In this document: in pieces, positions 4,609 through 64,000 of the stretch | Layout: every line of letters begins with the position of its first letter | Numbering within the stretch: the first letter of the stretch is position 1 | Assembly: GCA_026770705.1 (NCBI GenBank) | Contig: JANJGN010000052.1 | Location: 1,364,001 to 1,428,000 of the forward strand | From: Isurus oxyrinchus | Taxonomy: Eukaryota | Reading direction: 5' to 3' | Length of the DNA: 64,000 nucleotides | Notes under the pieces: model-generated | Databases searched by the model: none | The model's input: the letters and a program-made list of their open reading frames with translations, nothing else | What the model was told of the DNA's origin: nothing | Program-made: the position numbers and the translations under genes

Positions 4609-4857
4609 TCAGTTTCGCTTGAATCTGATCTGTGCGTATTCCGTCTCCTCTTCCTTGTGGACAGTCCCATCACCACTGCGCACCCTGAAGACTTGGGGAT
4701 TGGCGTAGAGAAGGTCGTTGGGATTGTCAGGGTTCCCATGTCCAGCATTGCCTCCCACTGGACCTTCAGAGAGACCCCGGGGAGCTGGGGTCTCCCCCTC
4801 GCTAGTTGTGTCTCTGGTTGTGTTCCGGGGCTCAGTAATCAGCACGTTCTGTTTACC
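4609..4857 (-). CDS. Gene A terminal cytoplasmic exon (LLYANP and TEYAQI motifs)
   Basis: AG acceptor 4859-4858, phase 0, GKQNVLITEP...TEYAQIRFKRN*. Confidence 0.85.
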   Translation of the reverse strand, partial: GKQNVLITEPRNTTRDTTSEGETPAPRGLSEGPVGGNAGHGNPDNPNDLLYANPQVFRVRSGDGTVHKEEETEYAQIRFKRN

Positions 4858-7800
4858 CTACAGAGAAATGGAAACAGAAGACATCCTCACATCATTTACT
4901 GGCACTGATAGGGTTAAATTATTGTGCAGCCTCATTAGTGTCAGTCGTGTCTCAGTTGGTTTTACTCTCTCTCTCATATCATAAAAAAGAAACCACCTAT
5001 GACAGGGCAGCTCTCCCTCAGTACTGACCCCCGACAGCGCAGCACTCCCTCAGGACTGACCCTCTGTCAGTCTCGCACTCCCTCGGTAATGTCTTTGGCG
5101 AGTGCCGGCTTGGATTCTGCACTCAGGTACCTGACGTGAGGCTCATTAACAAGAACCTTGTAATCAGAGAGAGGATGAGAGGGAAGAGAAAGAGAGAAAG
5201 GGATAGAGATAGGGTGTTACTAATCTATTAATGTATGTAATGTAATTGGAAATTGTCTTTTTAAACAGAGGTTTAGTCTGTGGGTGTGTCTGTGAGTGTT
5301 TTAATTGGATTAAAGCCAGCCAGTCCGGGTACTTTGATGTCAAGTAGTTTTGAGATGTAAACAAAGAGGTAAAGGGGTAATTTCCATTTTTAAACAGAGC
5401 ATTCAATGTCTGGGAGTGAAATCTTAAACAAATCAATGTTTATATTACTAATAAAATTGATACGATGAAGGATGGAGTTCAATGGTCCTGATGATACAAT
5501 GAGAATTTACATTCAAATAGAAGTGCTGGGTATAACTTGAGCAGTTTTGTGTGTGCAGAGCAGAGGCTTGTAACATCAAAGCAGCTGTAAGCCTACACCT
5601 GTCTGCAAAGGAACCAAAGTGAAAGGAACCTCATTTGGAATTTGTGAGGTGAAAATGCTTTCCTGGAATCTGCTTAAAGTCTATGTGTTGTCTTAGAGGA
5701 GATTAGTTTGAGAATTTGTTAAAAAGTTATGATAGTACTAGTTTGTAGCAATGTGCATATGATTAACTTGTGTTAATTAATAAAAGTCTCATGTAGTTTG
5801 ATATAAAACCATCTCGAGAACTGGTGTTCTTATTCCTGAATTTAGAGCTGCATCTCAAACATTCCACTGGGAAATATAGGTTATGACAGTTGTTTAAAGT
5901 TTCCCTCTGGGATTTTAAACAACAGCCTTTACCAGTTTTTGTGTCATAACAGAGAGACCGCATGATACTGAACCATTGCTGACTCCACAGGTACAAATCA
6001 GTGGGTAACTGGGCTGGGAATCTGGGACATGTGTTGTCTACACACTGAGATTGAAGCTTTGGAGTGAGTGTAAACAGTTCCTGTACCTGGTGCTTCACAG
6101 AGAGTGGACTGGGAGTCAATGCAATGTCACTGGTCCCTGAAACTCTCTCCTCCATCGCTGTCTTTCTCCTGTAATAACACAATATCACACTGTGGTTATC
6201 ATATAGCAGAGAATCAGTGCAGCACAGACACAGAGCCCACTGTAACCTTACACCAACTGGGACTGTCTCTTTAAATCACTTCTGCACAAAGCACAGAATC
6301 AAGAAACTTGACACCATCTATGACAAAGCAGCCCGATTGATCTACACCCCATCCACCACATTAAACATTCACTCCCTTCACCACAAACACACAGTGGCAG
6401 CAGTGTGTGTACCATCTACAAGATGCACTGCAGCAAATCAGCAAGGCTCCTTCGACAGCTCCTTCCAAACCCACGACCTCTACCATCTAGAAGGACAAGG
6501 GCAGCAGACACATGGGAACACCACCACCTGGAAGTTCCCCTCCAAGTCACTCACCATCCTGACTTGGAAATATATCATCGTTCCTTCACTGTCACTGGGT
6601 TAACATCCTGGAACTCCCTCTCTAACAGCACTGTGGGTGTACCTACACCACATGGACTGCAGCGGGTCAAGAAGGCAGCTCACCACCACCTTCTCAAGGG
6701 GCAATTAGAGATGGGCAATTTAATAACGGCCTCACCATTGACAGTCACATTCGATTAAAGAATTTAAAATCTCACAGCTCAGGAGGAAGCCACTCAGCCC
6801 ATCGTGCCTGTGCTGGCCCTTTGTAAAAACTGTCCAATTAGTCCGAAACAAATGTTTATATTAAAATCAAGTTAAATCTTCAGACTTACTTTCTCACACA
6901 GATGAAGATGAAGATTCCAGCCAGGAAAACACTCAACATGATCCCAGCCGTGAACAATCCTACTGTCCATTTACTGGAGTCTCTACCTGTAAAAACAGCC
7001 ATTAATTACTGCACTACAGGTTTACAATGATGCTCCGATGTATCTCGAGAAGCGATACACTCACTCAGTGTTTAAATACTCATTCTCGGGCAATGCTGAC
7101 ATTTATTGTCCATCCCTAGTTTCCCCTTGAGAAGGTGGTGGGGGGTCTTCCTCCTGAACCACTGGTTTGTCCCAAACTGGGAGACCAGTTCAGAGGGCAG
7201 GTAAGAGTTAACCATGTTGGTGTTTGAGACTGGAGTCACATATACACCCAGACCTGTTAAAATGGACAGGTTTCCCTCCCTTAAGATAATTAGTGACCCA
7301 TATTATATATGTAATTTCTATATATATGTATCAACTAACCTCCCTAAAATAATCAATTATCACCTCAATTTCATGCTGTTGTTTGTGGGATCTTGCTGTG
7401 CACAAATCAGCTGTTGCGTTTCCTACATGATGACAGTGAGCTCACATTGAAACTGCTTCACTGGTTATCGAGAGTTTTGGGAATTCCTAAGTATTTTATC
7501 CATGCAAGTCTTATTTTTCGATTTAATCCATGTAACATTTATATATAATATTTATCAATGTGATCCCTATAGCATAAATTTATAATATTTATCAATATAA
7601 TCTATGTAACATTTATATATAATTTTTATCCATTTAATCTCTGTAATATTTATATATAATGTTTCTCGATTTAATCCATGTAACATTTATATATAATATT
7701 GCCCAATGTAATATATGTAACATTTATATATATTTATCCATTTAAACTGTGAAACATTTATATATAATTTTTATCAATGTAATCTATGTAACATTTATAT

Positions 7801-10800
7801 ATAATATTTCTCGATGTAATCTATGTAATATTTATATATAATATTTAGTCGTTTGGGAGGAGAACCTGAGTATTGCTGAGAAAGGACATTTTGTCAAAGC
7901 TTTCTGTCTTGCACCCAATGAAGCAGCTTATCTGGGGGAGAGGGTTCCAGATTTCCACTCCCCTTTGTGTGAAGAAGTGCTTCCTGACATCACCCCCTGA
8001 ATGGCCTGGCTCCAATTTGACCAAGTGTTGCCATTGTCACATGAGATCAGGTGATTCAAAGCTTGGTCAAAGGGGTAAGTTCTAAAGAGCATTTTAGAGG
8101 AGGTAGAGAGAGAGGTGGAGAGGTTGAGGGAGGGAATTCTCGAGTTTAGGGATCAATCCAGCTGAGTGGAGATCGATCCTGAGCGAGTCTCTCACCTTTG
8201 ACCCACAGATACACCTTGAACATGGCTTCCCCGTGTGGGTTTTGAACCGAGCAGGATGCAATCACTCCCCCCTCATCCTGGGGTCTCATCAGGGTGAGGG
8301 AACCAGTCACCAGATGCCCATCTCTGACCTGCCACGACACAAAACCTCCGTGTGTTTGGTTACCACTGATGTTGGCACTGGGCAGGTGCCAGGTGAGGTC
8401 TCCGGGTGGGTTGGAGGTGGCCACACAGATGCAGGTGACCCCCTCTGATCTCCGAGTGCACTCCGACTGCTGGGAAATCTCCGGCTTATCTGAGGAGGGA
8501 AGGACAACAATAAGACAACGTCATAGCAAAGTTAGAGCGTAAGATAGAATGTTAACACTGAAACACTCATTCCTGCCTTTGTTACCTCTGCACTCAACTA
8601 TCCCAACACTCTCCTGCCCGACCTCCCATCTTCCACTCTCCGTAAACATCAGCTCATCCCAAACTCTGCTGTCCCCATGTCCTAACTCACACCGAGTCCC
8701 GTTCACACATCACTCCCTGTTGGTCACTGAGGTACACTGGCTCCCGGTCCGACAATGCCACAATTTTAAAATTCACATCGTCTCAAATCCCTCCTTACCC
8801 CCTCCCTATCTCTGATACCTCCTTCAGACCCTTCAACCCTCCCTATCTCTGTAACCTCCTCCAGCCCCTTCAACCCTCCCTATCTCTGTAACCTCCTCCA
8901 GCCCCTACAACCCTCCCTATCTCAGTAACCTCCTCCAGCCCCTTCAACCCTCCCTATCTCTGTAAACTCCTCCAGAACCTTCAACCCTCCCTATCTCTGT
9001 AACCTCCTCCAGCCCCTTCAACCCTCCCTATCTCTGTAACCTCATCCAGCCCTTACAACCCTCCCTATCTCTGTAACCTCCTCCAGCCCCTACAACCTTC
9101 CTTATCTCTGTAACCTCATCCAGCCCCTACAACCTTCCTTATCTCTGTAAACTCCTCCAGCCTCTACAACCCTCCGAGATCTCTGTGCACCTCCAATTCC
9201 AGCTTCTTGACATTCCCCCGATTCCTATCGCTCCACCATTGGCAGCCGTGCCTTCAGCTGCCTGGATCCTAACCTCTGGAATTCCCTCCCTCATTTCTCA
9301 CCTCCTTCGGACAAAATCTGACCACCACCAAAAGCATCTTCCCTTCACCCCCACCCCGTTGGCATTCCACAGGGATCATTCCCTCCAGGACACCCTGGTC
9401 CACTCCTCCATCACCCCTAGCACCTCAACCCTCTCCGATGACATCTTCCCATGTATTTACAGAAGGTGCAACACCTGCCCCTTTACTTCCTCCCCCCTCA
9501 CTGTCCAATGACCCAAACACTCCTACCAGGTGAAGCAGCGCTTCATGCAGACTTCCTTCAATTTAATCTACTGCCTTCACTGCTCCCAATGTGGTCTCCT
9601 CTACATGGGACAGACCAAACACAGACTGGGTGATCGCTCTGATGAACACCTTCGGTCTGTCCACAAGCATGACCCAGACCTCCCTGTCGCTTGCCATTTT
9701 AACACCCCACCCTGCTCTCATGCCCACATGTCCGTCCTTGGCCTGCTGCATTGTTCCAGTGAAGCCCAACACAAACTGGAGGAACAGCACCTCATCTTCC
9801 GACCTGGCACTTTACAGCCTTCCGGACTGAATATTGAGATCAACAATTTCTGGTCATGAACTCTCTCCTCGATCTTCACTGCTTTTTGAACCCTTTTTTT
9901 ATGTATTCATTTTAATTGTTTTATTTGTTAACTGTTTTCCACTTATTTTTATTATTATTATTTGAAATTCATTTCCATTTTTATTGATTGTTTTATCCGC
10001 AGATTTTAGTCTATTTTCGATCTTTATTCCCTCCACCGTCCCCTCCCCCTGCCACACCCTCACGAAGGCCATCTGTCTCTTTCCAGAGTGCTTACCCTGG
10101 TCCGCCCATTATCACACTCTGCTTAATGTCACCATTAGCACCTCCTTTATCCAATACCACCACTGTTAACAACCCTTTGACCTTTTGTTTATGACATCTT
10201 CCACAATCTCTCCATTGCCTCCACCTATCGCTGGTTTTCTATCCAGCTCCACCTGTCCCATCGCCCCCCCTTAGACAGGATATATTTCACCACATGTCTA
10301 CTTCCCTTTAGCTCTGAAGAGGAGTCATACAGACTCCAAACGCTAACCCTGTCTTTCTCTCCACAGATGCTGCCAGATGCTCAGAATCAGCTGGATGGAC
10401 AGAAAGACCAATGAGTGGCTTAGATCAAGAGGAGACGTTCAGCAATTAAAAGGGTTGTTCAGGACAGTTAGAGAGAGAAAGTTTGTCAAGTACGGAGATT
10501 GGAAACGAAGACCTGACAGCCTTGTCCTGACAACCATTGAAGGAGAAACTGAGAGCAAAAACAGAAAGGGAGAGGAAAAATTGGATGTGTGGATAACGTG
10601 GACTGAGCGAGGATTGAAGAAAACTGGATTAAAAACAACACGATCCCAATGGCTCCACGGAGACAACAAACAAACAAATGTATCTCCACACTCACATTCC
10701 ACAGTGATGGTTATGAACCCCTCCACTGCTCCATGTTCATTCTCTGCCACACACTGATAGTCACAACCTGGGCCCCCTCTGACCTATCAGGTTGGGATAA

Positions 10801-13800
10801 ACAATCCCAAGGGTCAATACAAGGAAGAGCTCTCCCTGGTCAATATCACTCATTAGAAAAGGACCAGTTTTGTCTTCAAGTGATGTTTGTGGGATCTTGC
10901 TCTGCACATTATATCCTAATACCGCTAATATAGAATAAAGGATGTCCATACTTACATTGTACAGTCAGTACGAGGGTCCGCTCCGATGAAACAGATGGAT
11001 ATCTCACTCTGCAGCTGAGAGTGTGTCCGTGGTGTTTGAGTGATGGGATCAGGGTCAGAACAGAAGTATAGGTCAGAGTGACACCATGCTGAGTTACAGT
11101 GTTTGAGACTGATCCAGGTACGTCAGTGGGAGTGTCCCAGGTTAAGACAGGTGCTGCTGTTCCATTGCACGTTGTGTTGAAGGTGCAGCTTACATCCACA
11201 CGCTTTCCTGCAATAATTTCAGCAGGGAATATCGTGGGTTTATCTGTGAAATCTAACAGACAGAGAATGGATCCTTTTAGAGAAATATAACATGAAGCGT
11301 CAGCTCAAATAGAAACCACAGACCCACAAGAGAAAGCACTTTTACAAGGATGATATCAGAACTGAGATGTTTCAACGATACTGATAGACTGTTAGACACA
11401 ATTAGAGTGATCAATGGGAGTGGAATACATTTAATCATTGATATTAAAGTGAGTATTAGAGTTTGCTTTAGGACTGAACTGGAAGCTATCACCAGGTTAT
11501 TGAGAATCAGACAGTGTGTTATAATAAGCTGTGTTTTGTGTTAATATGTAAACGTCACAGTTTGTGTTATTTCCCATTGACTGTTGAATGTGAATTGTTG
11601 AGTAATTATAACACAGCACTTACCAGAAATGTGAAGCTGGGTTTCAGGGTAATAGTTATGGCTCGGACCATTGTCAAATTCTATTCTGAATAAATAAGGT
11701 CCTTCATCTTCCCGTCTGATGCTGTTTATAATCAGGGAACAGTCGCCATCTTTCAAGTCTCCAGACAGCCGGGTCCGATGGTGGAACCGTGGTAACTCGT
11801 GACTGTGATCCTTGGAGTGAAAGGCAATGGGAGCCCAGGGAATCTGATTCTCATTATTAAACCAGACTCCACCTTGCGCTTGGTTTTCCAGACACGATTG
11901 ATAACTGTAATGACATGGAATCTGTACACACGAACCTTCCTGCGCTGTCACCTCTCGTGGAGTGTCAACTTTCCACTCTTGTGAGGGTTCAGCTGGGGAG
12001 AGAAATCTCAATATTTAACTCTGGATGGTTTGTGGATCCACTGAACCCGATATTTACAGATGAGGCTGAATTGGGGGGATGGTCAATACTGAGGAGGACT
12101 GCAACAAATTACAGGAAGATATGCATTCTGATGAAGAGTCATACAGACTCGAAACGTTAACTCTGTCTTCGTCTCCGCAGATGCTGTCAGACCTGCTGAG
12201 ATTTTCCTGCAATTTTTGTTTTTGTTACAGATTTCCAGCATCTGGAGAATTTTGCCTTTATATTACAGGAAGGTATTAATTAACTTTCAGAATGGGCAGG
12301 TCATTGACAAATGAATTTCTACGTTAAATGGGAGGCATTACATTTTGTTCAGGAAAATGAGAAGCTTGTTTATTACCTCGAAAATAAGAATCTAATTGGG
12401 GTAGAGGAACAACGTGATCTGGGGCAGAAATACAGGAATCAGTAAACGTGGGGACACAGGTTAACAAGGGGATTAAACATACAAACTAAACACTCGAGAT
12501 TATTTCTCCAGGGATTGAATTGAAAAGTAGAGAAGTGATGTGAAACTTGTCCTGAACCTTGGTCTGACTGCACCTGGAGTCACGTGTGCAGTTCTGGTCC
12601 CCATATTATATAAAGAATATAGAGACACTGGAGAGGGTGGTAAAAAGCTTCACAAGGATGATCTCCGCAATGTGAGGCTTCACCTATCAGGAGAGGATGT
12701 AGAGGATGGGTCTCTGTTCTCTTGAACAGAGAAGGTTGAAGGGGTGACCTCATTTGACCTTTGAAGTAATGAAAGGTTTTGATCGAGTAGACATGGAGAG
12801 AGTGTTTCCACTCGTCACAATGAACAAAACCTGAGTCTGACAATATAACATCCTCACTAATAAATCCAATGGGGAATTCAGGAGAAACTTCTTTACCCAG
12901 AGAGTGGGGAGAATGTGTACTTTAAGAATTACTTCATTGGTTGTGAATTGATTTAGGATCGTCCTGAGGTGGTGAAAGGCGCTATGGAAATGCGAGACTT
13001 GCTTTTGTGTTTTGAAAGCAGGTATCCAAGAATGAGATGGGAACTGAGAGGTAACAACAATCAGCAGCAATTTTCCTATTTTCAAACTTGGTGGGGAATG
13101 TGTCACTGAGCTGAATACACTTTCACTCCCAGACCCTTGAATTGCCAACACTGGGGTGTGGGTGATGGAGCAGCCCACAGCTCATGGAACCCTGGCTCAT
13201 CATTCTCTCAGAGATCTGGGTCACTGATCCCATTGCTCTCTGTGGGATCTTCCTGTGCACAAACTCACTGCCACGTTAGACAGTGATATTGATGTACACT
13301 GTCAACACATTTAATCATTCATGTTAAAGTGAGTATTAGAGGTTGCTTTAGGACTGAACTGGAAGCTATCACCAGGTTATTGAGAATCAGACAGTGTGTT
13401 ATAATAAGCTGTGTTTTGTGTTAATATGTAAACGTCACAGTTTGTGTTATTTCCCATTGAGTGTTGAATGTGAATTGTTGAGTAATTATAACACAGCACT
13501 TACCAGAAACGTGAAGCTGGGTTACAGGGTAATAGTTATAGCTTGGACCATTGTCAAATTCTATTCTGAAAAAATAAGGTCCTGCATCTTCCCGTCTGAT
13601 GTTGTTTATAATCAGGGAACAGTTGCCATCTTTCAGGTCTCCAGACAGCCGAGTCCGATTGTGGAACCGTGATAACTCGTGACTGTGGTTCTTGGAGTGA
13701 AAGGCAATGGGAGCCCAGGGAATCTGTTTCTCATTATTAAACCAGACTCCACCTCGCGGTTGGTTTTCCAGACACGATGGATAACTGTAATGACATGGAA

Positions 13801-16800
13801 TCTGTACACACGAACCTTCCTGCGCTGTCACCTCTCGTGGAGTGTCACCTTTCCACTCTTGTGAAGGTTCATCTGGGGAGAGAAATCTCAATATTTAACA
13901 CTGGATGGTTTGTGGATGCATTATCTATCCAATATTTACAGATGTTGCTGAATTGGGGGATGGTCAATACTGAGGAGGACTGCCACAAATTACAGGAAGA
14001 TATACATTCTGATGAAGAGTCATACAGACTCGAAATGTTTACTCTGTCTTCCTCTCCACAGATACTGTCAGACCTGCTGTGTTTTTGCACAATTTTTTGT
14101 TTTTGTTACAGATTTCCAGCATCTGGAGAATTTTGCCTTTATATTACAGGAAGGTATTAATAAACTTGCAGAATGGGCAGGTCATTGACAAATGAATTTC
14201 TACGTTAAATGGGAGGCATTACATTTTGTTCAGGAAAATGAGAAGCTTGTATCTTACCTCGAAAATAAGAATCTAATTGGGGTAGAGGAACAACGTGATC
14301 TGGGGCAGAAACACAGGAATCACTAACCGTGGGGACACAGGTTAACAAGGGGATTAAACATACAAACTAAACACTCGAGATTATTTCTCCAGGGATTGAA
14401 TTGAAAAGTAGAGAAGTGATGTGAAACTTGTCCTGATCCTCGGTCTGTCTGCACCTGGAGTCACGTGTGCAGTTCCGGTCCCCATATTATATAAAGAATA
14501 TAGAGACACTGGAGAGGGTGGTAAAAAGCTTCACAAGGATGATCTCAGCAATGTGGTAGTGTACCCATTAGTAGGAAAACATAATAATTTTCATAGTGGT
14601 AATTTAATTTATTGTAAGCTAGGAATAGAGGGGTCTTGATANNNNNNNNNNNNNNNNNNNNNNNNNNNNNNNNNNNNNNNNNNNNNNNNNNNNNNNNNNN
14701 NNNNNNNNNNNNNNNNNNNNNNNNNNNNNNNNNNNNNNNNNNNNNNNNNNNNNNNNNNNNNNNNNNNNNNNNNNNNNAAATATGGCTGGGCTGAACGTTT
14801 TGAAGTCTCAGAAAAGAAGCTAAATTTGAAATGTTTAATAGGTAAACATAGCCAGAGTTTTAGAATGGGAGGTGCGAAAGGAGAATTTGCAATTTCTACA
14901 TAGTCCTGAATTTCAATGAGGTGCTTAAATGTTACACCTAGTGAAGAGAGGCTAAGGCAAACAGCGTTTTTATTATTCACAATTTTACTGAGAAACTTGG
15001 TACCATGAAAGATTTCTATTATTGGAAATGTAAAGTCCAATGACATATTGGAACAATGGGGTTTACATTCAGAAAGGGAGAAACATCTCTAAATGAGATT
15101 AGGTTATGTGTAAGGGAAGGCATTGAAAGATCTACAAGTGTGAAATGCCTCTGTGCCCCTAATTGCTGTCTGCAAGAACTGAAGGAAAGAAAATTCACTT
15201 TGAATTTAACTGTTCAGGGTATTGTGTTACTTCCTCTGAGGCTTTTTAAATCTGCTTGTTTTACTGTTGCTTTACCAGAGGAGTAACTGGGAGTCAGATT
15301 AATTAGGGAAGCTAAGAATTAGCATAGCAGTAATTTGTAGAACTGTGTATGTGTTTAAAATTATTTCTTTTACTAATAAATGCTGAATTTAGTTTTGCCA
15401 AAACCCTCTCGACCTGGTGGACTCATTACTACTGAATTCAAGGGGAACAACTCAACATAAAAATACAACTTGCAAAACAGTTGTGGCAGCTGTTCCAAGT
15501 TTACTTTGGGATTTGAGCAGCTCAGCTTTTACCGTCTGCTGTGCCATAACACTATCAGGAGAGGAAGGAGAGTCCGGGCCTGGTTTCTCGTGAACAGAAT
15601 AGATTGAAGAGGTGACCTTGGGGAGGTGGCTACGATTCTGAAATATGCTGACAGAGTCGACGCACAGAGAGAAAGTTTCCCCAGGTGGAGAGGAGGAAAA
15701 GCAGAGGCAGAAATTACCCCCCTCGGGGTGGGGGAGGTGGGGGGGGTGTTGCCTGTGCAGGGTTGGCAGGGGTGGGCGTGAACCCGATTGGTGCCCCCGA
15801 TCGAGGCTGTGCCGCCATTTGACGTGGGCCGGACAGTTCGGGCCCGCCCAGCGTGACGGGTGCCCGGGAGCGTGGGCGGGGGAGGGGAGGGGAGGGGGAT
15901 TCCCTGAGGTGCCTCAGGGAGATGAGCTTCAGGTTTAAGACGCGTCCCCTCATGTGACAGTGCCTCATGAGCTGGGACATGCTCATCAGTTTTGATGGAA
16001 CAATTTTGTGTCATGAAGGAAAACTTCAGGAAAGCTCCTCCGGCCTGCGGATGAGGCTCCATGAAAACTACAAAGGATGCCTGGAGGTGAGACGAGCAGC
16101 CCTGATCCTTGTTTAAATGACTATTTCAATGTCCTTCATGGGCCTTGGACAATTGGGCGTGCAGGCTGCGACCCCCGCTGAACTGACATTCGAAATGATG
16201 CGCAGGGACGTTGGGACATCCGCCCGACATCATTTCACTGTACGCGAGCAGACCCCACCCACACTCACCGAGACAAGAATTCCACCCCCCCCTCCCCCCC
16301 GCCACCCCAGCAGGGACCAGCAAGGTATGAAATCCCAGAGGGAATTCAGGAGGAATTCCTTTCCCCAGGTCTGGGGAGAATGTGCAATTCAGCAATTATC
16401 TCATTGTCTGTGGAGTGATTTGGTGCATGTTTGAGGTGGTGAAAGGCACTATAGGAATGCAAGTCTTTCGTTTGTTGATTTGTCAGACTTTTAAAAAGCA
16501 TTAGGTAGACTGATGGGAGTGGATAACCTGATAACATTGATGGACACAGTCAATACATTTAATCATTGATATTAAAGTGACTGTTAGCGGTTGCTTTAGG
16601 ACTGAACTGGAAGCTATCACCAGGTTATTGAGAATCAGACAGTGTGTTATAATAAGCTGTGTTTTGTGTTAATATGTAAACGTCACAGATTGTGTTATTT
16701 CCCATTGAGTGTTGGATGTGAATTGTTGAGTAATTATAACACAGCACTTACCAGAAACGTGAAGCTGGGTTACAGGGTAATAGTTATGTCTCGGACCATT

Positions 16801-25154: not shown

Positions 25155-25294
25155 ACTTCCTCATTTTGTCTCACAGAGACACATCAATCCTTTCTAATTA
25201 AACACACAGAGGGAGCAGCACAGGAAGAGGTCATTCAGCCCAAGCAGAGCGTGTGGGCAGTTCCTCCCCAGGCGAGCAGTCGGACAGGTCCTGG
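25155..25294 (+). promoter_or_regulatory. Gene C promoter / non-coding exon 1
   Basis: ACTTCCTCATTTTG ETS motif; donor after 25294. Confidence 0.55.
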
Positions 25295-30300: not shown

Positions 30301-30419
30301 AGCTTTGTACAGCAACAATCTGGTCAGTCAGTGCGGACAAATAACGTGTGATATTGGGTTAAGTTGTAATGAAACTGGTCAGTGTCCTGGTTAGAATCAC
30401 CTTCGTATCAGAGAGGCAT

Positions 30420-34242: not shown

Positions 34243-34282
34243 ATGATCGGGAAATCCTACTTCCTCCTGTCACTTCTCCAAG
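34243..34282 (+). CDS. Gene B leader exon (MIGKSYFLLSLLQ)
   Basis: ATG 34243, GT at 34283; acceptor AG ends at 34200. Confidence 0.85.
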
Positions 34283-49200: not shown

Positions 49201-52200
49201 TGTGATAATGGGCGGACCAGGGTAAGCACTCTGGAAAGAGACAGATGGCCCTCGTGGGGGTGTGGCAGGGGGGAGGGGACGGTGGAGGGAATAAAGATCG
49301 AAAATAGACTAAAATCTGCGGATAAAACAATCAATAAAAATGGAAATGAATTTCAAATAATAATAATAAAAATAAGTGGAAAACAGTTAACAAAAAAAAC
49401 AATTAAAATGAATACATTAAAAAAGGGCTCAAAAAGCAGTGAAGATCGAGGAGAGAGTTCATGATCTGAAATTGTTGAATTCAATATTCAGTCGGGAAGG
49501 CTGTAAAGTGCCAGGTCGGAAGATGAGGTGTTGTTCCTCCAGTTTGTGTTGGGCTTCACTGGAACAATGCAGCAGGCCAAGGACGGACATGTGGGCATGA
49601 GAGCAGGGTGGGGTGTTAAAATGGCAAGCGACAGGGAGGTCTAGGTCGTTCTTGCAGACAGACTGAAGGTGTTCATCAGAGCGATCACCCAGTCTGTGTT
49701 TGGTGTCTCCAATGTAGAGGAGACCACATTGGGAGCATTGAATGCAGTAGATTAAATTGAAGGAAGTCTGCGTGAAGCGCTGCTTCACCTGGAAGGAGTG
49801 TTTGGGTCATTGGACAGTGAGGGGGGAGGAAGTAAAGGGGCAGGTGTTGCACCTTCTGTAAATACATGGGAAGATGTCATCGGAGAGGGTTGAGGTGCTA
49901 GGGGTGATGGAGGAGTGGACCAGGGTGTCCTGGAGGGAATGATCCCTGTGGAATGCCAACGGGGTGGGGGTGAAGGGAAGATGCTTTTGATGGTGGTCAG
50001 ATTTTGTCCAAAGGAGGTGAGAAATGAGGGAGGGAATTCCAGAGGTTAGGATCCAGGCAGCTGAAGGCACGGCTGCCAATGGTGGAGCGATAGGAATCGG
50101 GGGAAGGTCAAGAGGCTGGAATTGGAGGTGCATCGAGATCTCGGAGGGTTGTAGAGGCTGGAGGAGTTTACAGAGATAAGGAAGGTTGTAGGGGCTGGAG
50201 GAGGTTACAGAGATAGGGAGGGTTGTAGGGGCTGGAGGAGGTTACAGAGATAGGGAGTGTTGTAGGGGCTGGATGAGGTTACAGAGATAGTGAGTGTTGA
50301 AGGGTCTGGAGGAGGTTACAGAGATAGGGAGGGTTGTAGAGGCTGGAGGAGTTTACAGAGATAGGGAGGGTTGTGGGGGCTGGAGGAGGTAACAGAGTTA
50401 GGGAGGGTTGTGGGGGCTGGAGGAGGTTACAGAGATAGAGAGGGTTGTGGGGGCTGGAGGAGGTTACATAGATAGGGAGGGGTGTAGGGATGGAAGGTGG
50501 TTGCGGAGTTAGCGAGTTTTATAGGGGCTGTAGGAGGTTACAGGGATAGGGACGGTTGTGGGGGTTGGAGGAGGTTACAGAGATAGGGAGGGTTATAGGT
50601 GCTGAAGGAGGTAACAGAGATAGGAAGGGTTATAGGGGCTGGAGGAGGTAACAGAGATAGGGAGGGGGTAAGGAGGGATTTGAAACGATGTGAATTTTAA
50701 AATTGTGGCATTGTCGGACCGGGAGCCAGTGTAGCTCAGTGACCAACAGGGAGTAATATGTGAACAGGACTCGGTGTGAGTTAGGACATGGGGACAGCAG
50801 AGTTTAGGATGAGCTGATGTTTATGGAGAGTGGAAGATGGGAAGTCGGGCAGGAGAGTGTTGGGATAGTTGAGTGCAGAGGTAACAAAGGCAGGAATGAG
50901 TGTTTCAGTGTGAAGATTCCATCTTACGCTCTAACTTTGCTATGACGTTGTCTCATTGTTGTCCTTACCTCCTCAGATAAGCCGGAGATTTCCCAGCAGT
51001 CGGAGTGCACTCGGAGATCAGAGGGGGTCACCTGCGTCTGTGTGACCACCTCCAACCCACCGGGAGACCTCACCTGGCACCTGCCCAGTGCCAACATCAG
51101 TGGTAACCAAACACACGGAGATTTTGTGTCGTGGCAGGTCAGAGATGGGCATCTGGTGACTGGTTCCCTCACCCTGATGAGACCTCAGGATGAGGGGGGA
51201 GTGATTGCATCCTGCTCGGTTCAAAACCCACATGGGGAAGCCATGTTCAAGGTGTATCTGTGGGTCAAAGGTGAGAGACTCGCTCAGGATCGATCTCCAC
51301 TCAGCTGGATTGATCCCTAAACTCGAGAATTCCCTCCCTCAACCTCTCCACCTCTCTCTCTACCTCCTCTAAGATGCTGTGTACAACTTCCCCCTTTGAC
51401 CAAGCTTTGAATCACCTGACCTCATGTGACAATGGCAACACTTGGTCAAATTGGAGCCAGGCCGTTCAGGGGGTGATGTCAGGAAGCACTTCTTCACACA
51501 AAGGGGAGTGGAAATCTGGAACCCTCTCCCCCAGATAAGCTGCTTCATTGGGTGCAAGACAGAAAGCTTTGACAAAATGTCCTTTCTCAGCAATACTCAG
51601 GTTCTCCTCCCAAACGACGAAATATTATATATAAACATTACATAGATTACATCGAGAAACATTATATATAAATATTACATAGATTACATCGAGAAATATT
51701 ATATATAAATATTACATAGATTACATTGATAAATATTATATATAAATATTACATAGATTACATCGAGAAAAATTATATATAAATGTTACATATATTACAT
51801 TGCTAAATATTATACATTAATGTTATAGGGATCACATTGATAAATATATATAAATGTTAAATTGATTACATCGAAATGCAAGACTCGATAACCAATGAAG
51901 CAGTTTCGAAGTGAGCTCACTGTTGTCATGTAGGAAACGCAACAGTTGATTTGTACACAGCAAGATCCCACAAACAACAGCGTGAAATTGAGGTGATAAT
52001 TGATTATTTTAGTGAGGTTATTTGATACATATATATATAGAAATTACATATATAATGTGGGTCACTAATGACCCTTAAGGGAGGGAAACCTGTCCATTTT
52101 AACAGGTCTGGGTGTATATGTGACTCCAGTCTCAGACACCATCATGGTTAACTCTTACCTGCCCTCTGAACTGGTCTCCCAGTTTGGGACAAGCCAGTGG

Positions 52201-54755
52201 TTCAGGAGGAAGACTCCCCACCAGCTTCTCAAGGGGAAACTAGGGATGGACAATAAATGTCAGCATTGCCCGAGAATGAGTATTTAAACACTGAGTGAGT
52301 GTATCGCTTCTCGAGATACATCGGAGCATCATTGTAAACCTGTAGTGCAGTAATTAATGGCTGTTTTTACAGGTAGAGACTCCAGTAAATGGACAGTAGG
52401 ATTGTTCACGGCTGGGATCATGTTGAGTGTTTTCCTGGCTGGAATCTTCATCTTCATCTGTGTGAGAAAGTAAGTCTGAAGATTTAACTTGATTTTAATA
52501 TAAACATTTGTTGAGGACTAATTGGACAGTTTTTACAAAGGGCCAGCACAGGCACGATGGGCTGAGTGGCTTCCTCCTGAGCTGTGAGATTTTAAATTCT
52601 TTAATCAAATGTGACTGTCACTGGTGAGGCCGTTATTAACTTGCCCATCTCTAATTGCCCTTTGAGAAGGTGGTGGTGAGCTGCCTTCTTGACCCGCTAC
52701 AGTCCATGTGGTGTAGGTACACCCACAGTGCTGTTAGAGAGGGAGTTCCAGGATTTTGACCCTGCGACAGTGAAGGAACGGTGATATATTTCCAAGTCAG
52801 GATGGTGAGTGACTTGGAGGGGAACTTCCAGGTGGTGGTGTTCCCATGTGTCTGCTGCCCTTGTCCTTCTAGATGGTAGAGGTCGTGGGTTTGGAAGGTG
52901 CTGTTGAAGGAGTCTTGCTGAGTTGCTGCAGTGCATCTTGTAGATGGTACACACACTGCTGCCACTGTGTGTTCATGGTGGAGGGAGTGAATGTTTAATG
53001 TGGTGGATGGGGTGTCGATCAATCGGGCTGCTTTGTTGTTGATGGTGTCGAGATTCTAGATTCTGTGCTTTGTGCAGAAGTGATTTAAAGAGACAGTCCC
53101 AGTCATTGGTGTAAGTTACAGTGGGCTCTGTGTCTGTGCTGCACTGACTCTCTGCTATATGATAACCACAGTGTGATATTGTGTTATTGCAGGAGAAGGA
53201 CAGCAATGGAGGAGAGAGTTTCAGGGAGCAGAGACATTGCATTGACCCTCAGTTCACTCTCTGTGAACCACCAGGTACAGGAGCTGTTTACACTCACTCC
53301 AAAGCTTCAATCTCAGTGTGTAGACAACACATGTCCCAGATTCCCAGCCCAGTTACCCACTGATTTGTACCTGTGGAGTCAGCAATGGTTCAGTATCATG
53401 CTGTCTCTCTGTTATGACACAGCAACTGGTAAAGGCTGTTGTTTAAAATCCCAGAGGAAACTTTAAACAACTGTCATAACCTATATTTCCCAGTGGAATG
53501 TTTGAGATGCAGCTCTAAATTCAGGAATAAGAGCACCAGTTCTCGACATGGGTGTTATATCAAACTACATGAGACATTTATTAATTTACACAAGTTAAAC
53601 ATATGCACATGGCTACAAGCGAGTATTATCATAACTTTTTAACAAATTCCCAAACTAATCTCCTCTAAGACAACCCATAGACTTTAAGCAGACACCAGGC
53701 AAAGCATTTTCACCTCACAAATTCCAAATGAGGTTCCTTTCACTTTGGTTCCTTTGCAGACAGATGTAGGCTTACAGCTGCTTTGATGTTACAAGCCTCT
53801 GCTCTGCACACACAAAACTGCTCAAGTTATACCCAATGCTTCTCTTTGAATGTAAATTCTCATTGAATCATCAGGACCTTTGAACTCCACCCTTCATCGT
53901 ATCAATTTTATTAGTAATATAAACATTGATTCGTTTAAGATTTCACTCCCAGACATTGAATGCTCTGTTTAAAAATGGAAATTACCCCTTTACCTCTTTG
54001 TTTACATCTCAAAACTACTTGACATCAAAGTACCCGGACTGGCTGGCTTTAATCCAATTAAAACACTCACACACACACACCCACAGACTAAACCTCTGTT
54101 TAAAAAGACAATTTCCAATTACATTACATACATTAATAGATTAATAACACCCTATCTCTATCCCTTTCTCTCTTTCTCTTCCCTCTCATCCTCTCTCTGA
54201 TTACAAGGTTCTTGTTAATGAGCCTCACGTCAGGTACCTGAATGCAGAATCCAAGCCGGCACTCGCCAGAGACATTACCGAGGGAGTGCGAGACTGACAG
54301 AGGGTCAGTCCTGAGGGAGTGCTGCGCTGTCGGGGGTCAGTACTGAGGGAGTGCTGCCCTGTCATAGGTGGTTTCTTTTTTATGATATGAGAGAGAGAGT
54401 AAAACCAACTGAGACACGACTGACACTAATGAGGCTGCACAATAATTTAACCCTATCAGTGCCAGTAAATGATGTGAGGATGTCTTCTGTTTCCATTTCT
54501 CTGTAGGGTAAACAGAACGTGCTGATTACTGAGCCCCGGAACACAACCAGAGACACAACTAGCGAGGGGGAGACCCCAGCTCCCCGGGGTCTCTCTGAAG
54601 GTCCAGTGGGAGGTGGTGCTGGACATGGGAACCCTGACAATCCCAACGACCTTCTCTACGCCAATCCTCAAGTCTTCAGGGTGCGCAGTGGTGATGGGAC
54701 TGTCCACAAGGAAGAGGAGACGGAATACGCACAGATCAGATTCAAGCGAAACTGA
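34243..54755 (+). CDS. Gene B: Siglec-like (CD33/MAG-related) inhibitory-type receptor, L-V-V-C2-C2-C2-TM-cytoplasmic, ~695 aa
   Basis: Exons 34243-34282, 38873-39250, 42447-42815, 43629-43925, 48331-48612, 50977-51270, 52373-52469, 53193-53274, 54507-54755; all GT-AG; total 2088 nt, in frame. Confidence 0.85.
36050..38200 (-). mobile_element. Decayed Gypsy-type LTR retrotransposon relic (gag with Cys/His knuckle; LTR-like segment ~36970-38196)
   Basis: MSTKFPSLNWDVADRLSEFRMFKQRTELWF and CPAFHQSCKACGRKGH gag-like text; boundaries approximate. Confidence 0.55.
38873..39250 (+). CDS. Gene B V-set exon 1 (N-terminal type; essential Arg replaced by Thr)
   Basis: 378 nt, phase 1-1, VGLSQEW...REDAGSYFFTIKF. 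Confidence 0.9.
39440..40460 (+). mobile_element. L2/CR1-clade LINE reverse transcriptase fragment (frameshifted)
   Basis: LQSG...ETALIKVTN...LLVLLDLSAAFDTLDHTILL and LQLNIGKTEAIVF RT motifs. Confidence 0.85.
40540..41480 (+). repeat. Degenerate 37-bp minisatellite directly 3' of the LINE fragment
   Basis: Same unit as 8800-9180. Confidence 0.85.
41570..42330 (-). mobile_element. CR1 LINE 3' fragment
   Basis: QRDLGVLVHESQK; MRRNFLSQR...LWNSLPQRAVEA. Confidence 0.8.
42447..42815 (+). CDS. Gene B V-set exon 2 (internal type, DKPSQEW)
   Basis: 369 nt, phase 1-1, YFFR Arg retained, extra Cys 42545-42547. Confidence 0.9.
43629..43925 (+). CDS. Gene B first C2-set exon
   Basis: 297 nt, phase 1-1, DFTDKPMIFPAEIIAGKRVDVSCTFNTTCNG. 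Confidence 0.9.
44300..46340 (-). mobile_element. CR1 LINE fragment (~2 kb)
   Basis: ORFs 44697-44978 and 45868-46317 are CR1 ORF2-like. Confidence 0.8.
46380..47450 (+). mobile_element. Gypsy-type integrase fragment
   Basis: TRFPETIPL...FFTHYGLPLEIQSDQGS followed by STAYHP-like text; decayed. Confidence 0.75.
47662..47915. other. Assembly gap (N run) following a (CA)n microsatellite
   Basis: Run of n after CA repeats ~47533-47661. Confidence 1.
48331..48612 (+). CDS. Gene B second C2-set exon
   Basis: 282 nt, phase 1-1, DAPQNLSITS...ICSVESFPASNLTW...DTGDYQCVAENEHG. Confidence 0.9.
48945..49995 (-). mobile_element. Penelope-like element (mirror of 9320-10375)
   Basis: ORF 49459-49788, GIY-YIG signature. 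Confidence 0.75.
50977..51270 (+). CDS. Gene B membrane-proximal Ig exon (MAG domain-5-like)
   Basis: 294 nt, phase 1-1, YKPEISQQSECTRRSEGVTCVCVTTSNPPG. Confidence 0.85.
52373..52469 (+). CDS. Gene B transmembrane exon (uncharged TM)
   Basis: GRDSSKWTVGLFTAGIMLSVFLAGIFIFICVRK; AG/GTAAGT bounded. Confidence 0.85.
53193..53274 (+). CDS. Gene B cytoplasmic exon 1
   Basis: 82 nt, phase 2-0, KRRTAMEERVSGSRDIALTLSSLSVNHQ. Confidence 0.75.
54507..54755 (+). CDS. Gene B terminal cytoplasmic exon (LLYANP, TEYAQI)
   Basis: Phase 0, ends RFKRN*. Confidence 0.85.
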   Translation, partial: GKQNVLITEPRNTTRDTTSEGETPAPRGLSEGPVGGGAGHGNPDNPNDLLYANPQVFRVRSGDGTVHKEEETEYAQIRFKRN

Positions 54756-59123: not shown

Positions 59124-62100
59124 ATGATTCGGAAATCTTACTTCCTCCTGTCACTTCTCCAAGGTAATACCATCGTCAGCTCAGACAGATTTATGGTTAA
59201 TAGTCTTTGTAAAAGAACATTCTTATTGAGCTCTGATAGGGAACTGAATCAGCAGTGATCCAGTGTACAAACTCACACCAAGTCCCATTCATCCATGACC
59301 ACTGTGCTCACTGATATACACTGAATCCCTGTCTGACAGTAGAATTGGAGGACAGCAGAGGTCTTGCAGGGTTGTAGGGGCTGGAGGGGTTTACAGGGAT
59401 AGGCAGGTTTGTAGCAGCTAGAGCAGAATCTTAAAATTCAGTTGCTGTCGGACGTTGGTCACTGAGCGATTGGGATTGATGGGTTGAGTAGAGAAGCAGG
59501 GATAAATACTGGTGGATGAAGCCTATCCTAATGTGAGGTCTCCTATAGCAATGGCCTGAAATTTGTGTCCTTTCCTGCCTTTATTCAAAATTGCCCATGA
59601 AGACAACACAGCAGCTCCTAGAATAGACAGGCTGTTCAGTGTCACACTTCCTGTCCATTCTCACCTTGCTAGATACTTCAATAAGGGAGCAAGATAACTG
59701 ATAGAGAGAAGGAAGGTAAAACTGTCTGTGTGTAAAACTGTCAAATATTCTGAGTTATCATGAGTGTCTCTGATCCGCTGCAGAGTTTAAATTTCACAGA
59801 ATCTGAGCACTTTGCAGCTCAGAGAGAGACCATTGACTCACTGCCTGAAAGGGCGGTGGAAGCAGATTCAACAGGAACTTTCAGAAGGGGAACTGGATAA
59901 ATACTTGAAGGGAAATTTGCAGGGCTGTGTGAAAGGTGCTGGAGAGGAATTGGGAAAGAGCCAGCACATGCACGATGGGTCAAATGAGCTCCTCCTGTGT
60001 TGTATCATTCAACAATCAGACAATTTAAGAACCTTGTCAGCAAATCTTCAGAATCCTGCTGAATCACAGATGTTTCAGAAGGACAGGGAACAAGAAGTTT
60101 CTGGTATCAGCGTTTCATGTGGGGCCCAGTTCAGTTTGAGCAAAAAAATGACAACAGCATCTTTGAAAGTCATGAACCCACCACAGCGGCACCTCCGACA
60201 CATGCAGAGTTCAGGCTAGAGGCGCTTTGTTAGTGTGTTTCACAGTCTCTGCTGGAGTAGGGTCAGTGCTGAGCTTGGGGACAAGTCAGTCTACAATGCT
60301 GCATCGGAATCAACAATACAACAATATGGGGTTTGGATCAGAAATAATCCCTTAGACAATGAGGATCCAAAGAGATTCCTTAGACAATGAGGATCCAAAG
60401 AGATTCCTTTGGCAGTAAGAATCCAAAGAGATTCCTTATTCCATTGGTTGTCTAACTGGGGTCCATGATTTTCCAAGGGGTCCTTGGCAGAATCAAATTA
60501 TCGAGCAATAGTGTGTAAAATACCGGAGAGAACGGGAAAGGTGGGATCAATGGAAAACTGTTCACTCTGTTTACACTAATGGGAGTCAGTCTCAGTAATG
60601 GAGACCATGAAACTATCATCGATTGTCATACGCACCCATCTGGTTCACTAATGGCCTTTAGGGAAGGAAATCTGCCGTCTATATCTGGTCTGGCCTACAT
60701 GTGACTCCAGACTCATAGCAACGTGGTTCCTCTGAAATGTCCGAGCAAACCATCCAGTTCTCACCATGCTAGAAACTTCAATAAGGGAGTAAGATAACTG
60801 AAAGAGAGAAGGAAGCCTAAGCTGTTCATGTGGATAGATGTCAAATATCCTGAGTGATCATGATTGTCTCTACTCTGCTACAGAGATTATGTCACGGGAC
60901 ATTAGAGATGGGCAGTAAATGCTGGCCTTGGCAGCGACGCCCACATCCCATGAATGAATACATTTACAAAATCTTATTACTTGGAAGGTGCAAGTGCAGG
61001 TTGTTATGATCCTTGAGCAGACCCTCTCAGCACTGACCCTACTCCAGCAGACCCTGTGAAACACACTAACAAAGCGCCTCTAGCCTGAGCTCTGCATGTG
61101 TCGGAGGTGCCGCTGCGGTGGGTTCATGACTTTCAAAGATGGTGTTGTTTATTTGTTCAAACTGAACTGGGCCCCACACAAAACGCTGATACCAGAAACC
61201 TCTTGTTCCCTGTCCTTCTGAAATATCCGTGACTTCAGCAGGATTCTGAAGAGTTGCTGATGGAGGAACAGGCACCCAATTTTTTTTGATAATTTACAGT
61301 TAGGAACCAATAATATTTTGTTTCAAGTAGACGAGGTTTGAGATTTAAGATGCTTGTGAAGAGAATAAAGCTACAAGATTCTATGGCTTTTAAACAAACA
61401 AAAATAAACTTTACTGCACCAGCTCAGAAAGATAAAATAATTCACAATATCCACCTTATACTCTAACATTCTGGATTAATATGAGCTCATGTGAATTAAC
61501 AGGCAAACTGTGGTCTCACAGCCACATTACTCATTAAATTGTAAACGCAACCAAGATAGAGCCCATGGATTTCACAACAACCCACCTGGACATCAGTGAA
61601 CACTGTCAGTCAACCAATCTCACTGAAACTCTATTCTCTCATGAGGGATTCCAATCTTCAACTTCGAAGATCTTGCCTTGGAATTCTCTCCAAAAGTCGC
61701 TTCAACTCGGATGGCCTCAGTGACATTCGACCTCACAGGGTTTCCATCTCTTCTCCTGAGGCTCCATTGCCCTGGATTCCCGACTATATACTCAAGCACC
61801 ACTAGGATTAGATGAAAGGTTTTGATTGACTGGGTAGACAGAGAATGTTCCCTCTTGTGGGCAGGAGAATAACTAGAGGCCGAGTGATTGGTGATTCCTT
61901 AAAAATTGAAGAGGGAATGAACACCAATCAGATTGAATCAGATTAGCCAATCAGCTGTGTTGAAGAGCAGACAGGAATGTTAGGCTAATTAGTGATTCAT
62001 GATGGTGATAATGGGGGGAGTTCTGAGGGCTCCTAATCCATTGTCCTGTCTTGTAAATCAGCACTGAATGGATCTCAGTTGGTGTGTCTTGTAGACACTG

Positions 62101-64000
62101 TGTTGGGTGGAAGACTGGCTTCACTAAGGGGAAGTGGTAGCAGAGAGGTATTGTCACTGGGCTAGTATTCCAGAGGCCCAGGGTGATGCTCTGGGGCCCT
62201 GGGTGTGAATCCTATCACAGCAGATGAATGGGATTAAAAAGCCTGGTTCACTGATCACCTGTAGGGAAGGAAATCTGCCACCCTTACCCAGTCTGGCGTA
62301 CATGTCACTCCAAACCCACAGCAATGTGGTTGATTCTTAAATGCCTCTGATGGACATGGGATGGGCAATAAATCCCATGAATGAATAATTTGAAAAAAAG
62401 CTAAACTGGGTCCTGAGGACCATGAGCCAATGTAGAATGAACTTGTCCACTCCTGCATCCAGGATTCTCTTCCATCCATTGTGAAACCTTGAGGAGTTCC
62501 TTGTGTGTCCTGTAGATGGTCCACACTGCAGCCAATGTGCCCCAGTGATGGAGGAAGTGGATATCAAGTCTAGTGGATCGAAAAAACATCCAGAATTAAG
62601 TATTGATATTTCTCTCCACAGTTGGACTGTCACAAGAGTGGAAAGGTGACACTCCACAACAGGTGACAGCGCAGGAAGGTTCGTGTACACAGATTCCATG
62701 TCATTACAGTTATCCATCACATTTGGAAAAGCAACCACGAGTTGGAATCTGGTTTAATAATGAGGAATGGAGAACATCGTCTATAGCCTTTCACTCCAAG
62801 GATCACAGTCACGAGTTACCACGGTTCCACCATCGGACCCGGCTGTCTGGAGACCTGAAAGATGGTGACTGTTCCCTGATTATAAACAACATCAGACGGG
62901 AAGATGCAGGACCTTATTTTTTCAGAATAGAATTTGACAGCAGAAATAAATACAGCTACTATCCTGTAACCCAGCTTCACGTTTCTGGTAAGTGCTGTGT
63001 TATAATTACTCAACAATTCACTTTCAACTCTCAATGGGAAATAACACAAACTGTGACGTTTACATATTAACACAAAACACAGCTTATTATAACACACTGT
63101 CTGATTCTCAATAACCTGCTGATAGCTTCCAGTTCAGTCCGAAAGCAACGTCTAATACTCACTTTAATATCAATGATTAAAAGCATTAACTGTATTATCA
63201 GGTTATCCACTCCCATCAATCTCTCCTGTCCTGTTTAAAAGTCTGACTTATCGATAAAAGAAAGATGTGCATTTCTGCTGCGCAATTTACCACCTCAGGA
63301 GGATCCAAATCCCTTCACAGCCAATGAAATTATTCCTGAATTGTAGTCACAGATGTTAAACACAGCAGGCAGTTTGTGCACAGCAAGATCCAACAAACCA
63401 CAAGGTGATAAATCACCCAGATCACTGAGGAAATGAGAAGCCAGTGAACTCAAACCTCTGGTCTGATGAAGAGTCATACGGACTCGAAACGTTAACCCTG
63501 TCTTCCTCTCCACTGATACTGTCAGACCTGCTGAGTCTTTCCAGCAATTTTTGTTTTTGTTTCAGATTTCCAGCATCCGCAGTATTCTGCTTTTAACTCC
63601 AATCTCTGGTCTGAGCCTCTTCTCTCATCCAGTGTTCTCAATTCACATGTCTCGGAGTGAACGTGTATTAAGCTGAGAGACAGAAACACTACTGCCAAAG
63701 AGCAAGAAAATCTTTCCTGATCATTGTAACCTCTCAGTTCTGATATCATCCTTGTAAAAGTGCTTTCTCTTGTGGGACTGTGATTTCTATTTGAACTGAT
63801 GCTTCACGTTATATTTCTCTAAAAGGATCCATTCTCTGTCTGTTAGATTTCACAGATAAACCCACGATATTCCCTGCTGAAATTATTGCAGGAAAGCGTG
63901 TGGATGTAAGCTGCACCTTCAACACAACGTGCAATGGAACAGCAGCACCTGTCTTAACCTGGGACACTCCCACTGACGTACCTGGATCAGTCTCAAACAC
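59124..64000 (+). CDS. Gene D: Siglec-like receptor, L-V-C2... (runs off the right edge)
   Basis: Leader 59124-59163 (MIRKSYFLLSLLQ), V 62622-62987, C2 from 63847; open frame throughout. Confidence 0.8.
62622..62987 (+). CDS. Gene D V-set exon (single V, canonical Siglec residues)
   Basis: 366 nt, phase 1-1, GSCTQIPC...DCSL...REDAGPYFFRIEFDSRNKYSYYP. Confidence 0.9.
63847..64000 (+). CDS. Gene D first C2-set exon (partial)
   Basis: AG 63845-63846, DFTDKPTIFPAEIIAGKRVDVSCTFNTTCNG. Confidence 0.85.

Follow-up and report, generated by a model that had tools for sequence, protein, structure and literature searches.

A palindromic cluster of five Siglec-type gene units in Isurus oxyrinchus, with inhibitory-type members and an activating-type member that is probably a pseudogene

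Organisation of the gene cluster

The stretch of DNA analysed here, hereafter the window, comprises 64,000 nucleotides (nt) of Isurus oxyrinchus (assembly GCA_026770705.1, contig JANJGN010000052.1, positions 1,364,001 to 1,428,000, forward strand) and carries five Siglec-type receptor gene units, in the order E, A, C, B and D, each with one leader exon; the window is without any non-Siglec neighbour gene. A first-pass annotation, made from the sequence alone, had described five units sharing a near-identical leader. A scan of the window with the 45-nt leader pattern agreed with this count, returning exactly five sites with three mismatches or fewer against a chance expectation of 0. Every leader codes for M[IV][GR]KSYFLLSLLQ and has a phase-1 GT donor at its end. 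These sites were located via a repeated 0.8-kb promoter segment, a scan using a hydrophobicity filter having missed the leader. Behind the leaders lie seven V-set exons, four C2a exons and further C2 exons, all of phase 1-1 with AG/GT borders (Table 1). Exons were examined individually and reading frames were judged from exon phase arithmetic. Genes D and E extend past the ends of the window, and their tail-coding exons lie beyond it.

Almost the whole window is covered by a nested palindrome of about 60 kb, whose arms are about 96% identical in self-comparison. Positions 1-12111 pair in inverted orientation with 59359-42328, the identity being about 96% and the arms differing by a 4.4-kb indel, and additional inverted pairs were found at about 17.9-19.3 kb versus 34.5-33.2 kb, placing the palindrome centre at about 19-33 kb. 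Both assembly gaps in the window are intronic and no exon borders a gap, so that no reading frame rests on one. The gap at 14642-14777 adjoins a 1.9-kb tandem duplication of a V exon (11424-12674 versus 13304-14555), and the V-exon count of gene A is therefore a lower bound, since extra V copies could hide there.

Genes A and B: inhibitory-type units

Genes A and B are mirror copies encoding type I receptors with two to three stacked V-set exons, two to three C2 domains, an uncharged transmembrane (TM) segment and a tail of about 110 amino acids (aa). Gene A has one V exon more than gene B, and a 4.4-kb deletion relative to B has removed the 5' part of its C2b exon. The TM exons of both genes contain no charged residue, and near the end of the tail an intact distal TEYAQI motif is found, which resembles an immunoreceptor tyrosine-based inhibitory motif (ITIM) or switch motif (ITSM). 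The stop codon of gene A at 4609-4611 explains why the stretch described in the first-pass annotation began at position 4609.

The V exons of these genes (11624-17117, minus strand; 38873-42815, plus strand) fall into two classes, an N-terminal class starting with GLSQEWKG and an internal class starting with [ED][PK]PSQEWKG and having one more Cys in its BC loop (YPSCLENQ). Gene models of catshark, Mustelus and Cetorhinus contain the internal class as well. Stacked V domains, numbering from 2 to 6, were also seen in predicted proteins from Xenopus, turtles, Arapaima, perch and a mormyrid.

Gene C: an activating-type unit with a dead V exon

Gene C, at the palindrome centre, is composed of a leader, one V exon, C2a and a single terminal exon encoding a TM segment with an internal Arg (Arg-TM). 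This last exon has a polypyrimidine/AG acceptor of phase 1, and its Arg lies within the hydrophobic span, in the outer third of the TM, a position that does not tell DAP12 from FcR-gamma as a partner. The exon anatomy thus confirmed the two alternative membrane modules recognised in the first-pass annotation, namely an uncharged TM with a tyrosine-motif tail in A and B, and an Arg-containing TM with a 12-aa tail free of Tyr in C.

The V exon of gene C carries four lesions of different kinds: two codons have turned into stops, and the frame is shifted twice, by a 10-nt indel and by a T added to a T-run. Four independent lesions make it a pseudo-exon and, with the sole Arg-TM unit of the window having a dead lectin exon, A/B and C form no working pair in this assembly. 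Gene C has most likely become a pseudogene, though its transcription may persist; SIGLEC16P and the SIGLEC14-null allele offer parallels in humans.

Splicing of the Arg-TM exon was investigated by mapping contigs of four public runs on 25100-30500, with a likeness of at least 90% accepted. Three of the runs are of RNA type and come from three studies, X10 from one organism (A) and X17 and X18 from another (B), whereas X1 is a DNA run. Each of the four joints expected of a gene C-type transcript, from the 5' untranslated region (5'UTR) exon to the Arg-TM exon, was present in all three RNA-type runs and absent from X1 (Table 1). A transcript joining the Arg-TM exon to Siglec immunoglobulin (Ig) exons, on which the first-pass annotation had staked its interpretation, was thereby found, with a paralogue as its possible source. 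Within the same runs, spliced contigs were far deeper than unspliced ones. Some contigs carry D- or A-like V sequence, with loose ends at 26656 and 26702, and X17 contigs over 26794 retain the frameshifting 7-T run of the window, which hints that gene C or its orthologue is itself transcribed.

Exon conservation and probable gene conversion

The C2a exons of A, B and C share 97-98% nt identity, compared with 53-87% for the adjoining introns, and the ratio of non-synonymous to synonymous substitution rates came to about 0.1 in C2a and ranged from 0.5 to 1.9 among V pairs (small counts). Near-identical C2a exons across ITIM-type and Arg-TM units may reflect homogenisation or constraint at the exon level, which is typical of paired receptors. 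The V exon of gene C, in turn, shows only 77-84% identity to its paralogues and is dead. Between C and D, the V exons (26489-26865 versus 62622-62987) are 84% identical and the first 300 nt of the intron that follows them 96% identical; a V exon more diverged than its own intron points to patchwise conversion of one copy together with decay. More generally, such uneven exon and intron identities indicate that the units are mosaics, as expected of gene conversion plus decay.

Siglec identity and shark relatives

The V exons of the cluster were compared with known structures and with predicted proteins. The internal V exon of gene B (42449-42814) matched Siglec-5, Siglec-7, CD33 and Siglec-8 in the PDB at E values of about 1e-14. 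The best 17-18 PDB matches were all Siglecs, including Siglec-5, -7, -8, -10, CD33, MAG and sialoadhesin (E 1e-15 to 1e-12), and the first non-Siglec followed about 15 bits lower. In a PDB profile search with the six intact V exons, Siglec-5, CD33, sialoadhesin and MAG scored 58-61 bits, compared with 46 bits for the first non-Siglec, 36 bits for Siglec-15 and 25 bits for CD22. The landmarks EGxC..PC..CSL..YFFRxE align with those of Siglecs, EGSC..IPC..DCSL standing opposite EGLC..VPC..NCSL of Siglec-5, and the essential F-strand Arg, which aligns with YFFRVE of Siglec-5, is kept by the three V exons of A (V1, V2, V3), by B V2 and by D V1. The Siglec cysteine pattern is likewise found, with B- and E-strand Cys and an extra Cys in the V domain and SC-x6-C in C2a, the exception being A V1 (IPC to IPF). 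By analogy with solved Siglec structures, the extra V Cys would pair with the extra Cys of domain 2. C2a itself gave a weak match to domain 2 of MAG and CD33. The assignment of the V domains to the Siglec type in the first-pass annotation is borne out by these leading matches and by the alignment of the essential Arg and cysteines.

In a search of 1.84 billion representative proteins, elasmobranch models ranked first, with matches from Scyliorhinus canicula, S. torazame, Cetorhinus, Carcharodon, Mustelus, Stegostoma, Chiloscyllium, Hypanus, Hemitrygon, Pristis and Rhinoraja. The highest identities were to Siglec/CD33-like models of Carcharodon carcharias and Cetorhinus maximus, in line with the cartilaginous-fish origin proposed from the first reading of the sequence and indicating a shark near the lamniforms. 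The C-terminal Arg-TM cassette was also found at the end of two S. torazame proteins, XP_072326180 (P0006) and P0169, and of XP_072409577 (P0022) from Chiloscyllium punctatum, and is kept, Arg included, in three shark orders. When the Arg-TM region of P0006 was used in a word-indexed search, only two proteins came back and P0022 was missed, so that this search carries little information on the spread of the cassette. P0169, named 'polymeric immunoglobulin receptor-like', is a Siglec that combines at least five stacked V domains with C2a and the Arg-TM cassette. Names assigned automatically to these shark proteins are unreliable, ranging over Siglec-8, -10, -12, -13, -14, CD33-like, MAG-like, pIgR-like and hemicentin-like.

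A V-domain tree was built from 67 sequences, taken from the protein search results and from the window. The tree is unrooted, its sequence names are automatic, and curated references for MAG, sialoadhesin, CD22, Siglec-15 and human CD33-related Siglecs are not part of it. All elasmobranch V sequences formed one clade (94/90), in which Arg-TM and ITIM-tail members are interleaved, and the internal V class appeared as a starred subclade common to lamniform-like and carcharhiniform sequences. A tetrapod CD33-related-like clade of frog, turtle and mammalian sequences, including primate SIGLEC12, was recovered at 100/100 with no shark sequence inside. Judged from these sequences, the tree supports a lineage-specific elasmobranch Siglec subfamily, as the first-pass annotation had envisaged. 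Among the V domains sampled here, the sharks have a clade of their own, outside that of the tetrapod CD33-related sequences.

Other features of the window

An exon-like segment was observed about 450 nt 5' of every leader (654-761, minus; 18673-18768, minus; 24543-24635, plus; 25214-25294, plus; 33712-33792, plus; 58610-58690, plus), with 70-80% protein-level identity to a cytoplasmic coding exon from a second type of shark Siglec tail (P0016, P0007). The copy at 25214-25294 is used by gene C as its non-coding first exon (joint 25294>25706). With a tail-exon-like segment ahead of each leader, the duplication unit seems to start within the tail of a former upstream gene.

Minisatellite arrays with units of 33, 43, 37 and 24 nt occupy 19543-21220, 31743-33011, 22326-23137, 23994-24390, 8800-9175, 40528-41479 and 50143-50666; they lie in introns and spacers, are mirrored between the palindrome arms and are a source of long spurious open reading frames (ORFs). 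Reverse-transcriptase-like and other retroelement ORF fragments are also located in introns and spacers (30646-31071, minus; 39471-40170, plus; 44697-44978, minus; 45868-46317, minus; 9530-9859, plus, with 49459-49788, minus), and are likely to be the cause of the long leader-to-V1 introns of genes B and D. A TM-like ORF at 38404-38496 (minus) was judged a chance match, lacking both a homologue and a splice context. An Rfam scan of the whole window at the gathering score, with no permissive scan made, found no family.

Table 1. Exons, assembly gaps and RNA splice joints of the Siglec-type gene cluster in the window.
Feature	Position	Strand	Remarks
Gene E leader exon, coding part	197..236	-	remaining gene before window start; mirror of gene D leader
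Gene A last exon	4609..4857	-	LLYANP, TEYAQI; TGA stop 4609-4611
Gene A cytoplasmic exon 1	6087..6168	-	
Gene A uncharged TM exon	6890..6986	-	97 nt; phase 1 in, phase 2 out
Gene A C2c	8196..8489	-	membrane-proximal Ig domain
Gene A C2b remnant	10696..10762	-	last 22 codons and donor, without acceptor
Gene A C2a	10956..11252	-	domain 2, C-x6-C motif; 97-98% nt identity to B and C copies
Gene A V3	11624..11992	-	internal class; intact, YLFRIE
Gene A V2	13504..13872	-	internal class; starts EPSQEWKG, extra BC-loop Cys; intact, YFFRIE
Assembly gap	14642..14777	.	gene A intron, V1 (donor 16752) to V2 (acceptor 13872)
Gene A V1	16752..17117	-	N-terminal class; open frame, essential Arg kept, B-strand Cys to Phe (IPFNYSYP)
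Gene A leader	18198..18237	-	MIGKSYFLLSLLQ; phase-1 GT donor
Gene C non-coding first exon	25214..25294	+	donor 25294 spliced to leader exon in RNA contigs
Gene C leader exon	25705..25784	+	ATG 25745, coding part 25745-25784; MVGKSYFLLSLLQ
Gene C V pseudo-exon	26489..26865	+	377 nt; TAT to TAA twice, 10-nt indel, one extra T; splice sites kept
Gene C C2a	27725..28021	+	intact
Gene C C2b remnant	28347..28497	+	last 50 codons, without acceptor; skipped by RNA joints
Gene C Arg-TM terminal exon	30161..30300	+	short stalk, TM with internal Arg (ILILGIRAVIF), 12-aa Tyr-free tail, TGA
Gene B leader	34243..34282	+	
Gene B V1	38873..39250	+	N-terminal class; open frame; essential Arg replaced by Thr (YFFTIKF)
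Gene B V2	42447..42815	+	internal class; intact, YFFRIE; query for PDB and protein searches
Gene B C2a	43629..43925	+	
Assembly gap	47662..47915	.	gene B intron, C2a (43925) to C2b (48331); behind CA microsatellite, 415 nt 5' of C2b acceptor
Gene B C2b	48331..48612	+	complete
Gene B C2c	50977..51270	+	
Gene B uncharged TM exon	52373..52469	+	97 nt
Gene B cytoplasmic exon 1	53193..53274	+	
Gene B last exon	54507..54755	+	LLYANP, TEYAQI; TGA stop 54753-54755
Gene D leader	59124..59163	+	MIRKSYFLLSLLQ; leader pattern
Gene D V exon	62622..62987	+	intact, essential Arg present
Gene D C2a exon	63847..64000	+	cut at window end
Joint, 5'UTR exon to leader exon	25294>25706		X10, X17, X18; not in X1
Joint, leader to V	25784>26489		X10, X17, X18; not in X1
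Joint, V to C2a	26865>27725		X10, X17, X18; not in X1
Joint, C2a to Arg-TM	28021>30161		X10, X17, X18; not in X1

Interpretation and alternative explanations

Together, these results make it probable that the window holds a palindromic, recently duplicated cluster of five genes from an elasmobranch-specific Siglec subfamily, in which A and B are of inhibitory type and C has an activating-type build and is probably a pseudogene. In genes A and B, the conserved F-strand Arg would bind sialic acid and the tyrosine tail would recruit SH2 phosphatases. In a gene C-type receptor, the TM Arg would pair with the TM aspartate of an ITAM adaptor (immunoreceptor tyrosine-based activation motif), either DAP12 or FcR-gamma. 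Receptors that depend on ITAM adaptors, such as Siglec-14, -15, -16 and -H, activating KIR and LILRA, are marked by a basic residue in the TM together with a very short tail. The Arg-TM form itself does exist: RNA shows it spliced, and three shark orders have conserved it. The proposal of the first-pass annotation, a paired activating and inhibitory system, accordingly stands at the level of the family, where the RNA joints and the cassette in other sharks speak for it, but only in part at this locus, where the lectin exon of gene C is dead and A and B have a degenerate proximal ITIM.

Several observations weigh against this interpretation. The proximal tail motif of A and B, LLYANP, has Pro at Y+3 and is a non-consensus ITIM; it recurs in the Carcharodon model, and a canonical motif is present in homologues from Cetorhinus (LLYINV), Scyliorhinus (LLYASI), Stegostoma (ILYANI) and Mustelus (LLYANI). 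The first V exon of A and that of B each miss a key residue, so that an inhibitory lectin function is not assured, and the joining of all stacked V exons into one mRNA is predicted from the gene models of other sharks. The RNA status of X10, X17 and X18 was guessed by a program, and is backed only by splice joints absent from X1. Contigs were accepted at a likeness of at least 90%, and the V sequence in several of them is D- or A-like, so that expression may come from an Arg-TM paralogue located elsewhere. No functional activating gene was demonstrated within the window.

The alternatives concern the state of gene C, the signalling of the Arg-TM form, the assembly and the nature of the V domains. 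Intact splice sites throughout gene C, intact exons other than V, RNA contigs showing every gene C-type junction and the 7-T run kept in X17, which suggests transcription of C or its orthologue, would fit gene C as a functional activating partner of A and B, its V lesions being assembly errors or allele-specific. This is distinctly improbable, as the four lesions are independent and of different kinds, the V exon reaches only 77-84% identity with its paralogues next to an intron 96% identical to that of D, and a transcript keeping the 7-T run is still unable to encode a lectin domain. It is unlikely, too, that the Arg-TM form is something other than an adaptor-coupled activator, for example a signalling-dead decoy, a protein retained or degraded unless paired with another partner, or a shed soluble lectin. 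The tail does lack any motif of its own and an Arg placed in the TM's upper third does not point to DAP12 in particular, but the cassette is kept across three shark orders with its Arg, and a basic TM residue with a short tail is an established sign of ITAM-adaptor-dependent receptors, as for Siglec-15 (PMC7226832).

Very little credence can be given to the mirror copies being an assembly artefact, whether a false inverted duplication or collapsed haplotypes, with fewer than five genes in reality. The window does contain two gaps and many tandem arrays, and short DNA contigs are unable to span the arms; nevertheless, the arms differ by about 4% and by the 4.4-kb indel, one of them has a V exon more, and their lesions are distinct (Cys to Phe in A V1, Arg to Thr in B V1), which makes them too divergent for haplotypes or fold-back artefacts. 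That the genes encode generic Ig-superfamily receptors of the pIgR, CD300 or JAM type in place of sialic acid lectins is hardly credible at all. One homologue is automatically named 'polymeric immunoglobulin receptor-like', and pIgR and JAML appear lower in the PDB lists, but that model is built from the same Siglec V exons, the leading PDB matches are all Siglecs with a drop of about 15 bits to the first non-Siglec, and the YFFR[IV]E Arg, the B- and E-strand cysteines and the extra interdomain Cys all align.

Relation to known Siglec systems and significance

Paired Siglecs have been described in mammals. The shark cluster resembles Siglec-5/-14 and Siglec-11/-16 in that neighbouring paralogues have nearly identical ectodomain exons (C2a in the shark), one with an uncharged TM and a tyrosine-motif tail and the other with a basic TM and a very short tail, and in that the activating partner is prone to pseudogenisation. 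It differs from these pairs in its V domains, which belong to an elasmobranch clade outside the tetrapod CD33-related clade, and in having inhibitory members with two to three stacked V-sets, a degenerate proximal ITIM and a dead V exon in the activating copy. CD33 (Siglec-3) shares the V-C2 build of the gene C-type transcript, the V-set match (E about 1e-14) and a tail with a proximal LxYAxL-type and a distal TEYxx[IV] motif, canonical in the Cetorhinus, Scyliorhinus and Stegostoma homologues, with the proximal one degenerate in A and B; however, CD33-related Siglecs obtain the same PDB profile scores as sialoadhesin and MAG, and the tree shows no grouping with tetrapod CD33-related sequences. 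Tandem N-terminal V-sets recall Siglec-12, and several shark models have been named 'Siglec-12' by NCBI, but the internal V exons of sharks are a class of their own with an extra BC-loop Cys and up to at least five copies (P0169), independent of the primate duplication. Siglec-15 likewise is of activating type, and its basic TM residue is retained in fish (PMC7226832). It differs from the shark receptors in using Lys instead of Arg, in its far more distant V domain (36-38 versus about 60 bits) and in being a single conserved gene without a paired cluster.

Fish genomes are said to lack CD33-related inhibitory Siglecs, on the basis of teleost data (PMC7226832). In the searchable literature, no paper on shark Siglec pairs or shark DAP12 was found, and the whale-shark genome paper only mentions the topic in passing. 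The proteins themselves are already present as automatic, inconsistently named NCBI models, and the new part is their interpretation and not the genes. The locus, the transcripts and the homologues in at least three shark orders point to expanded Siglec clusters in cartilaginous fish, in which ITIM/ITSM-type and Arg-TM-type ends are placed on near-identical ectodomains. This adds a second system, at a very great distance, to the question of whether the pairing of activating and inhibitory Siglecs is ancestral or convergent, and also lets comparative immunologists study how gene conversion, palindromes and pseudogenisation shape such pairing.

It is conceivable, though rather doubtful at present, that sharks have a Siglec subfamily of their own with the full paired design, evolved independently or inherited from the jawed-vertebrate ancestor, and marked by homogenised ectodomain exons, palindromes that favour conversion and an activating partner that dies repeatedly. 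In that case, the published lack of CD33-type inhibitory Siglecs in fish would apply to teleosts only, and the arms race in which sialylated pathogens exploit an inhibitory Siglec and an activating decoy forms the counter-move would either date back about 400 million years or be convergent.

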